From: Octopus sinensis
Lineage: Eukaryota
DNA: 64,000 nucleotides
Reading direction: 5' to 3'
NCBI RefSeq assembly: GCF_006345805.1
Contig: NC_043015.1
Span: 13,268,001 to 13,332,000 of the forward strand
The position numbers and the translations under genes were made by a program. Below are positions 57,650 to 60,039 of the stretch, in pieces. Under the pieces are notes generated by a model. It ran no database searches. It saw nothing but the letters and a program-made list of their open reading frames with translations, and was not told the DNA's origin. Every line of letters starts with the position of its first letter. Position 1 is the stretch's first letter.

Positions 57650-58499
57650 GTCTAGGGAGAGTCATTATGCCAATATCATTAATACACGCACTGGTTCAAT
57701 TCTACACCTTTATTATAATCAATTGGCTAAATATCCAACTAGCTAATCGATTGTTTGTTTAATTTGGTTAAACAGTAAGTCATTTGTTTCGCTTTTGACC
57801 ATACTTACACACTCAACACACACGCGTACACACAAAGACGTATATGGGCACACATGCATGCACAGCAAGTGCACGTGCTTACACGCAAAACTCATACATG
57901 TAGACTCACTAAAGCACGCACGCATCAAAGAACAGAAGTACGCATACAAACACGCGCAAGCACACACACACAAGCACTCACACATAAATACAGAGAATAC
58001 ATACATACATACACACACACATACATACATACATACATACATACATACATACATACATACATACGCAAGCACACGCGAACACTAGCACGCAACAAGTCTC
58101 AAGCAAACAAACGCGGCCTCCGTAACGGATTAAGCCAAAAGTCATTGAAAAGGTTGGATGTAACAACGAAAGAGCTTTGACAAACAAAACAAATGATTTA
58201 CTGTTTAACCAAATTAAACAAACAATCGATTAGTTAGTTGGATATATATAAGCAAGGGCAATGACCAAATAATATGCATCCAGCAAGTTCAATTTTGTGT
58301 CTTTTATAGTCTTGATGTCGTAATCAAAGGAGATAAGGCATCACAAATGACCTTTTTCAGAGTTCCCGTGAATGGTGCGAAGAAGCGGGGAAGTTATTCT
58401 CAAACTGGCAGAAGCCAGATTATAAACTATTAATAATTAAGGAGTGGAATTGAACCAGTGCGTGTGTTAATAATATTAACATAATGACTCTCTCTAGAC
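57650..58499. mobile_element. Nested element with about 65-bp TIRs (gtctagggagagtcattatg...)
   Basis: 57650-57719 is the reverse complement of 58431-58499 with about 7 mismatches over the first 60 bp. Confidence 0.8.
57734..58242. mobile_element. Innermost MITE with 56-bp TIRs and TA flanks
   Basis: 57731-57789 versus the reverse complement of 58187-58245: 2 mismatches in 59 bp; CA/TACA-rich interior. Confidence 0.85.
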
Positions 58500-60039
58500 A
58501 CCGCAAAACTTGTTTCAACACACGAATTCATATAAAGAATCTTGCAAGCCAGATGCAAAAACGATGATGTTTTTAAACATCAAGTGACTCTGGGGGTCCA
58601 CCATAATAAAATAGTAAGCAAAGGGGTCCATATGTAAAAAGTGGTTGAGAACCACTGGTTTAGAACTAAGTTAATCCTCATCGAGTAGATCTCCGATTAG
58701 TGACATCTTGACCATGACCAACTAATTTTTTTCAGCCAGAATTTAGGACTATATTATATCATTACTTATCTTTTAAAAAAAAAGACGACAGGGTGCAAAA
58801 TGCTGGAGACTTGGCTGTTATTACTAGCAAGCCTAGCACCCATGTAGGGGCTCGTGCAAGTGAATTGAGGATGCAAATGAGGCTAGAACACATTGGCTAA
58901 TGTGTGCATAAACGATGGCTATATTGATTCGGATAAGGAATTTATGGTTCATGCTGAACCCAACAGCGTTTGAGTTGATAATGAATCAAATTACATACCC
59001 TCTCTATCAGTCCACAGTCCCTCCCTCCTCTTCCTCCTTTTTTCTTCTTCTTCTCCTCCCTCTCCTATCATCGTTACGTCATACTCGTTTCATCATTACC
59101 AGCTCCGAGAGTAAACACTTCGCCAATTATGCTTTCTCTGAATTTCAGCCTTCTATAACTCTTCCCCACCCATTTATCTTGCTCCCGTGGATGTTTAACC
59201 CTATAATGCCTAATGCTACAAAATTCTTTATGCTTCAAATACTACAATTCTCTCGGGAAATAAACAGCAAAAATAGAAGATTGGCAGAGCTTTAAAGATT
59301 TTGTTCGTTTGAAAAACATTACAGCAATTTTATATCTTGATAGTTATAACAAAATTATTGATATTTCCAAAAATAATCCCTATCTATCTATCTATCTATC
59401 TATCTATCTATCTATCTATCTATCTATCTATCTATCTATCTATCTATCTATCTATCTATCTATCTATCTATCTATCTATCTATCTATCTATCTATCTATC
59501 TATCTATCTATTTGCCTGCCTGCCTGTCTATATTTTACATCAAACACATTTCTAACAATCAAATATGCTGAAAAAAAGACACACACACTTATATGTGAGT
59601 GTGTGTGTGCGTGTGTGTGTGTGTGGTGTGTGTGTGTGTGTGTGTGAGTGTGTGTGTGTATTCATACGCTTACATATACTACATTTTTTTTCATATCAAA
59701 CGCATTATACTTAATGTATGAGGGCAAAGGCCAACAAATATTTTTTCTACATATCGATCCATTCAATGTTATATAGTTAAACTGAACATAAACCACATCA
59801 GCATCACCTTTCCGAGATAGTTTATAATCTGGCTTCTGCCAGTTTGAGAATAACTTCCCCGCTTCTTCCCACCATTCACGGAAACTCTGAAAAAGGTCAT
59901 TTGTGGTGCCTTATCTCCTTTGATTAGGACATCAAGACTATAAAAGACACAAAATTGAACTTGCTGGATGCATATTATTTGGTCATTGCCCTTGCTTATA
60001 AAACCTGAAATTTCAAAATTATTGCTTAAACATGTAATA

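Follow-up and report, generated by a model that had tools for sequence, protein, structure and literature searches.

How did a 184-nt segment of octopus DNA come to be written, inverted and nearly unchanged, into a nest of transposons 1.4 kb away, and does the resulting pair of copies act in any transcript? The two copies lie in a 64,000-nt stretch of the Octopus sinensis genome (contig NC_043015.1, positions 13,268,001 to 13,332,000), which we call the window and within which all coordinates are given. An earlier note on this DNA had read the pair as a recent local capture of exon-like sequence inside a nested transposon – by templated repair, transduplication or as a cDNA patch – and had suggested that the copy could serve as an editing-complementary or splice-masking sequence.

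Positions 58247–58430 are the reverse complement of 59817–60000, with 180 of 184 nucleotides identical (97.8%). A repeat finder, a self-BLAST of the window and a pairwise alignment agree on this, and the three comparisons together confirm the 184-bp reverse-complement copy with four substitutions that had been reported; in the alignment, the mismatches fall at 58320/59927, 58341/59906, 58365/59882 and 58378/59869. The arm pair has a BLAST E-value of 1.5e-88 within the window, which excludes a chance origin. Homology stops abruptly at either end, without extension. The segment is present twice in the 64 kb, and the pair has the highest identity of any non-simple repeat in the window, the runners-up being SINE pairs at 88–92%. 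Comparison of the window with 29 kb of O. vulgaris chromosome OX597816.1 recovered common SINE families (80–88% identity) and a mariner copy (84% over 1.3 kb), and the 184-nt segment had no match in that DNA. Pattern scans for the segment and for the arm of the middle element described below were likewise negative in metagenome and prokaryote-genome collections, as is to be expected of sets that contain no cephalopod DNA.

The right copy (59817–60000, minus strand) lies in an island of about 400 bp (59665–60060) that is single-copy within the window and is bordered by a (GT)n tract on one side and a SINE on the other. Its flanks (59665–59816 and 60001–60060) have no second copy in the window, and the ‘unique’ DNA into which the earlier note had the right copy merge is an island of only about 400 bp. 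The copy ends at a TA within TATA (59997–60000). The island also contains a weak inverted match between 59721–41 and 59972–92 (17/21), which is marginal, being reached by 1 of 40 shuffles. The spacer between the two copies (58431–59816, 1386 nt) comprises the right arms of two of the transposons described below, single-copy DNA, a pyrimidine-rich stretch, a (CTAT)33 array at 59380–59511 and the (GT)n tract.

Three elements are nested around the left copy. The outermost (57383–58657; 1275 bp including its inserts) is a hAT-like non-autonomous element with perfect 15-nt terminal arms, CAGTGGTTCTCAACC. It has the short terminal inverted repeats and the 8-bp target-site duplication looked for in hAT elements, although the flanks, ATTTAGAT and GTTTAGAA, are identical at only 6 of 8 positions; from the CAGTGGTTCTCAA-type arm and the 8-bp flank we take it to be of hAT type. 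The middle element (57655–58494) is a hairpin MITE of Tc1/mariner type (Stowaway-like), with TA flanks at 57653–54 and 58495–96 and arms at approximately 57655–57719 and 58431–58494 that are about 88% complementary over 67 nt. Its own sequence amounts to only 137 nt, with a loop consisting of CAATTGGC and TA. The inner element (57730–58246, 517 bp) sits in that loop and has 62-nt arms that are 95% complementary, the right one at 58187–58246, TA flanks at 57728–29 and 58247–48, and a microsatellite-like interior whose open reading frames (ORFs) are microsatellite translations only. The middle and inner elements share the features tested as typical of MITEs, namely terminal inverted repeats, a TA target-site duplication and no coding capacity. 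None of the three elements has a further copy in the 64-kb window or in the 29 kb of O. vulgaris DNA, and a window-wide search with the middle and inner arms gave no other match, the mariner copies at 42.3–42.8 and 50.0–51.3 kb included. The inner element carries no sign of attempted excision apart from the 184-nt copy beside it.

The left copy (58247–58430, plus strand) occupies a precise place in this nest. Reading from left to right, the order is left arm of the middle element, CAATTGGC, TA, inner element, 184-nt copy, TA and right arm of the middle element. The copy itself begins with TA, which it shares with the inner element as that element's right flank, so that TA is present at 57728–29, 58247–48 and 58431–32. 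Homology to the right copy begins one base past the last nucleotide of the inner element and runs up to the right arm of the middle element. The left copy is thus bounded by terminal inverted repeats on both sides, as the earlier note had it: to its left lies the right arm of the inner element, to its right (from 58431/33) that of the middle element. Overlap between the joined sequences may amount to TA (2 nt) at the left junction and to 0–2 nt (AT) at the right one, both values being ambiguous in AT-rich DNA with a TA frequency of 0.10.

Removal of sequence from this arrangement gives a simple result. Once 58247–58430 is deleted, what is left is a 137-nt hairpin MITE that encloses the inner element, with a TA at either side of it. 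Removing the inner element as well as the 184-nt copy leaves the middle element as a single hairpin of 137 nt whose central 13 nt, AATCAATTGGCTA, are unpaired; when three bases of flank are added at each end, the reconstructed 143-nt sequence folds as one hairpin at −82.6 kcal/mol. Because so compact a hairpin remains, the inner element and the 184-nt copy can be assigned to one and the same TA site of the MITE loop. We also considered a different parsing, in which 58249–59998 would be a single long-arm element with 182-bp arms and TA flanks, and rejected it: such an element would enclose the right arms of both the middle and the outer element by chance, and the nest would lose its symmetry.

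These boundaries bear on which copy came from which. A sequence written into one point necessarily has boundaries at the junctions of that point, whereas a sequence copied out of a nest needs none there. The boundaries of the left copy are transposon junctions and the right copy has no adjoining transposon arm, an arrangement that favours the right copy as the source and the left as the derived one. Copying from left to right was ruled out by the same logic, since a copy taken from the left would not stop exactly at transposon junctions. A local, right-to-left copy made after, or together with, the nesting is accordingly well supported by the layout of the locus. Of the ‘local capture’ proposed earlier, what stands is a local copy of the right-hand sequence no older than the nesting; what does not is its placement simply inside the middle element, since on its left it abuts the terminal base of the inner element and on its right the TA and right arm of a 137-nt MITE.

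The same boundaries speak against two explanations that need no copying event of this kind. In the first, no local copying took place: each copy is a separate member of a family, be it a dispersed repeat or the family of the middle element, whose normal interior would be the 184-nt segment. The weak 21-nt inverted match (17/21) gives a hint in this direction, in that the source island could be an old small element. But there are just two copies in 64 kb and none in 29 kb of O. vulgaris DNA, their identity is 97.8% where the real repeat families of the window reach 88–92%, the right copy has no adjoining arm of the middle type, and the boundaries coincide with the insertion point of the inner element, which could not be foreseen for a family member. 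We regard this origin as very doubtful. In the second, a chimeric or folded read would have made a false inverted duplicate during assembly. Inverted duplications are a known type of long-read artefact, and nothing specific to the locus suggests one; the four substitutions between the arms, the complex spacer of 1386 nt, and boundaries that lie at TA and transposon junctions rather than at the fold-back point of a read make it extremely improbable here.

Two further explanations accept that DNA was moved from right to left and differ in how it arrived. According to the model favoured earlier, the middle element captured the segment, by transduplication or by abortive gap repair of a longer ancestor, and the inner element inserted later and independently. 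The position of the copy between the arms of the middle element, with the parental copy 1.4 kb away, is as this model would have it, and stuffer capture in gap repair is documented (PMC3814204). However, if the 184 nt came first, the reconstructed 327-nt sequence offered the inner element 30 TA sites, of which it must have hit the very one that borders the homology, a choice with a chance probability of about 3%. The interior of the middle element would moreover consist of filler plus 8 nt only, and the hairpin reconstruction is simpler. The 1-in-30 coincidence suggests that the patch and the end of the inner element are mechanistically linked, probably, and we consider a capture by the middle element unlikely. 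On sequence grounds, the position of the copy points to break repair at a transposon end rather than to gene capture by the middle element.

A mechanistic link of another sort would be one-sided transduction. The inner element would once have sat at the TA at 59999–60000 and been excised together with its 184-bp flank by use of a false end; the composite (57730–58430) would then have reinserted at the TA in the MITE loop, and the donor would have been restored from the homologue. The composite is indeed TA-flanked (57728–29 and 58431–32), the source copy ends at a TA within TATA, as noted above, and local reinsertion is common among DNA transposons. But the donor reads ...AAACTAT|CTCGG, with no TA after the putative false end, and the scheme calls for an additional copy of the element and for its clean loss. 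The false transposon end itself was sought at the distal edge of the copy and rejected, as the distal end of the 184 bp bears no similarity to the inner arm (shuffle p = 0.3–0.6). Transduction of this form is quite unlikely.

We therefore turn to repair of a double-strand break at the end of the inner element, of which the left copy would be a templated filler patch, and to which we give a probability of roughly one in two. Tc1/mariner-type transposases cut precisely at the boundary between element and TA, and the centre of a palindrome is a fragile spot. The ancestral state would have been the compact 137-nt hairpin MITE within the hAT-like element, and the 517-bp TA-targeting element would then have entered the sole TA of the MITE loop. 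A break may next have arisen at the right end of the inner element, which would be at once a transposase cut site of Tc1/mariner type and the centre of the palindrome. Repair synthesis, primed on a very short match, could then have used a template 1.4 kb away on the same DNA molecule. In the fold-back version of this scheme, resection of the right-hand side would have exposed a 3′ end at about 58431, which would have annealed near 59817 on its own strand and been extended to 60000, and the new strand would have been joined to the end of the inner element at the TA overlap. The expected outcome would be an inverted, near-identical 184-bp copy between the last base of the inner element and the flanking TA.

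Several features agree with such a route. The copy is inverted, its register is proximal-to-proximal (58430 pairs with 59817) and its template lies 1.4 kb away in cis, all of which fits a fold-back or template switch; the junctions, though ambiguous, allow an overlap of 0–2 nt of the sort seen in end joining. As in filler insertions, the insert copies nearby sequence (184 nt, 1386 nt away) and sits at a single point from which its removal restores a sensible sequence. We infer the break, the enzyme, the fold-back route and the order of events from this anatomy. The main weakness of the reading is size and distance: inserts of polymerase theta or fold-back type typically run to tens of nucleotides and come from next to the break, and the octopus copy, at 184 nt and with its template 1.4 kb off, exceeds them in both respects. 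The junction microhomology, ambiguous and at most 2 nt, and the finding of no sign of excision of the inner element beyond the patch itself likewise count against it. Longer filler DNA produced by gap repair is the nearer class. Polymerase theta has low fidelity, and had an error-prone polymerase synthesized the patch, age alone need not explain the 2.2% divergence between the copies.

What, then, is the segment that was copied? The earlier note had placed the right copy almost exactly within an exon-like segment on the minus strand (59808–60004, 197 nt), with an alternative version of 78 nt (59808–59885). The splice-like motifs are where it put them – TTTCAG/G for an exon start at 60004, AAG/GTGATG for an exon end at 59808, and an internal CCTTTTTCAG/A at 59885/86 that gives the 78-nt segment – and they are, with two open frames, all that marks the segment as exon-like. 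The longer frame encodes 65 aa. There are 71 ORFs of at least 90 aa in the window, so the openness of these frames is uninformative. With criteria tuned to the present case, 40 exon-like segments are found on the two strands, covering 5.5% of the bases of the window; the segment is thus mildly unusual, though it was noticed after the fact.

Protein comparisons gave this proposal no help. Neither frame had a relative at E ≤ 10 in a collection of 5.8 billion proteins, annotated ones of Octopus vulgaris among them, and the 65-aa frame had no match by HMMER among 1.84 billion representatives; no Pfam domain was found in either frame. In calibration of the protein search, a mariner fragment at 50.2–51.0 kb returned an annotated Octopus vulgaris protein at 82% identity. 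The surroundings were equally silent: 89 concatenated non-repeat ORFs from 32–64 kb (at least 45 aa, and also those of 36–44 aa from 44 kb on) gave no protein match, and none of ten window ORFs was present in the protein collection by exact look-up. All four differences between the copies alter an amino acid in both frames, a pattern that in itself does not bear on selection. The searches having returned neither a protein relative nor a Pfam domain for the two frames, and the nearby ORFs that were tried having matched nothing, the exon proposal is unsupported, and we judge from the sequence that a real exon here is highly improbable. The suggestion that the left copy is a cDNA patch fared no better, there being no positive sign of one: it has no second exon and no poly(A), and it stops 4 and 9 nt short of the proposed splice sites.

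The pair could nevertheless matter as RNA. In the predicted minimum-energy fold of a 1.84-kb transcript of either strand, 181 of the 184 arm bases would pair if the arms were co-transcribed, with a predicted arm–arm duplex of −327 kcal/mol. Such a duplex would be an ADAR or Dicer substrate if both arms lay in one transcript. This is the physical basis of a functional reading that is compatible with any of the origins above: the right copy would be an unannotated octopus exon or transcribed segment, and the patch, 1.4 kb further downstream in the same pre-mRNA, would create a new intramolecular duplex of 184 bp, acting as an editing-complementary sequence, a splice mask or a source of hairpin RNA and siRNA. 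The predicted duplex and the splice-like motifs that bracket the right copy are in its favour. Against it are the lack of a protein relative of either frame, the unmatched non-repeat ORFs tried from 32–64 kb, four differences that all change an amino acid in both frames, and a scan of the whole window against Rfam that found no family. ADAR edits a long near-perfect duplex promiscuously, not at chosen recoding sites, which also tells against a selective role. There is no evidence of a function for the copy, both exon status and an editing or splice-masking role are unsupported, and we hold the functional reading to be exceedingly doubtful. If it were true, the locus would record the birth of an editing-complementary or hairpin-RNA structure, at 2% divergence, by way of break repair at a transposon end.

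The interest of the locus lies mainly in its legibility. Three nested elements, one TA site and exact boundaries make the junction anatomy unusually readable, and an allele lacking the insert, if one came to light, would turn it into good textbook material. If the patch arose as we propose, the locus would illustrate cleanly, at one site, how short inverted duplicates of neighbouring DNA are scattered by repair at transposon ends, and how inverted repeats are thereby seeded in a cephalopod genome rich in repeats. Were the source segment transcribed, patches of this type would be a concrete means of generating new double-stranded RNA beside existing sequence, and it is on such RNA that the heavy editing of cephalopods acts; no support was found for that step, and the interest is low unless the region is transcribed.

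Among known systems, the pair resembles inverted Alu pairs and intronic editing-complementary sequences in having inverted copies within 2 kb of each other and a predicted long duplex if both are in one transcript. It departs from them in that its target is only a putative exon and its long, near-perfect duplex would be expected to undergo promiscuous, not site-selective, editing; duplex-forming complementarity is predicted, and an exon that could be the expressed target has no homology support. The likeness to transduplication by Pack-MULEs and other Pack-type elements is that host DNA lies between terminal inverted repeats and has a parental copy elsewhere. Unlike a Pack-MULE, the octopus chimera carries a fragment without genic evidence – its frames have neither a protein relative nor a Pfam domain and the nearby ORFs tried are unmatched, where a Pack-type element would hold a gene-derived fragment – and there is no evidence that it has moved with its cargo or of a MULE-like element.

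Break repair offers closer parallels. In yeast, fold-back templated inverted duplications form at double-strand breaks and are mostly about 5–34 bp and break-adjacent (PMC11724301). The octopus patch shares with these snap-back events an inverted copy taken from the same side of the break, in the register expected of a resected 3′ end that primes on itself, but it is 184 nt long and comes from 1.4 kb away. For DNA transposons, gap repair that aborts, switches template and picks up stuffer DNA is described for Ac/Ds, P and Tc1 and has been linked to the origins of non-autonomous elements and MITEs (PMC3814204). Foreign stuffer placed between transposon arms by interrupted, template-switching synthesis is common to that process and to the present locus, whereas classical abortive gap repair replaces the interior of the excised element and the octopus patch lies outside the arms of the inner element, in the loop of an already miniature MITE.

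Error-prone repair of breaks left by Tc1 excision in the germline of C. elegans is the remaining parallel: 24% of its deletion products carry inserts templated from nearby sequence, the inserts depend on polymerase theta, and the template is in ‘close proximity’ to the break (PMC4490562). There the element is lost and the inserts are short and derived from the immediate vicinity of the break, while the octopus nest still contains its element and has an insert of 184 nt with a template 1.4 kb off. The two have in common a break (in the octopus, a proposed one) at a TA-flanked transposon end, an insert that matches nearby sequence and, at most, minimal overlap at the junctions. Repair of this general kind is already known, and on the proposed reading the octopus locus is an ordinary further instance of it.

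The source island, the roughly 400 bp (59665-60060) around the right copy of the duplicated 184 bp segment, contains a 21-nt inverted match in which 59721-59741 pairs with 59972-59992 at 17 of 21 positions, joining DNA outside the segment (59721-59741) to DNA inside it (59972-59992). The score of this match was reached in one of 40 shuffles. If the match is real, the source island would be an old, small inverted-repeat element lying in its own native context. The spacer separating the two copies of the segment holds a perfect (CTAT)33 microsatellite (59380-59511; 100% matches), which is probably polymorphic in length and might be used to mark the inverted-copy locus.

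Two SINE-like families are present in numerous copies (72-92% identity) in the window, at 24800-25030, 26108-26335, 54390-54765, 56861-57094, and 60826-61058, and also at 55449-55707, 56581-56860, 60086-60346, and 63651-63899. The start of one SINE-like copy lies some 60 nt away from the right-hand 184 bp segment, and related copies are also present in the 29 kb of O. vulgaris chromosome OX597816.1 compared with the window. At 33590-34979 a 455-bp unit is repeated 3.1 times at 98% identity; because the unit is itself composed of GTAT/GT microsatellite, this region is a microsatellite block that was duplicated in tandem very recently. An (ATT)n block (55118-55210) was paired by the repeat finder with the complementary stretch immediately preceding it (55005-55107), the two forming a near-palindromic trinucleotide tract (55005-55224). 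Within the ORF at 54868-55341 this tract would encode long homopolymer stretches of N, H and Y.

ORFs in 27165-27850, 30930-31240, and 36456-37016 carry motifs, such as LRWFGHMVRMDE... and VIEVSCPADINISLKIK..., that by eye resemble the C-terminal portions of LINE/retroelement proteins. A Helitron fragment lies on the minus strand at 46432-47933, where Pfam assigns Helitron_like_N to an ORF of 209 aa (E = 6.6e-22) and the ORF following it downstream has weak helicase C-terminal matches. A Mos1/SETMAR-like mariner copy lies at 50022-51268 (minus strand) and a second at 42353-42820 (plus strand), both with broken frames. For the middle (57655-58494) and inner (57730-58246) elements of the nest, both flanked by TA, the terminal inverted arms have no other match window-wide, these mariner regions included. 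The 50022-51268 copy shares 64% identity with insect SETMAR-like transposases, 82% with an O. vulgaris hypothetical protein and, at the DNA level, 84% over 1.3 kb with a copy on O. vulgaris OX597816.1.
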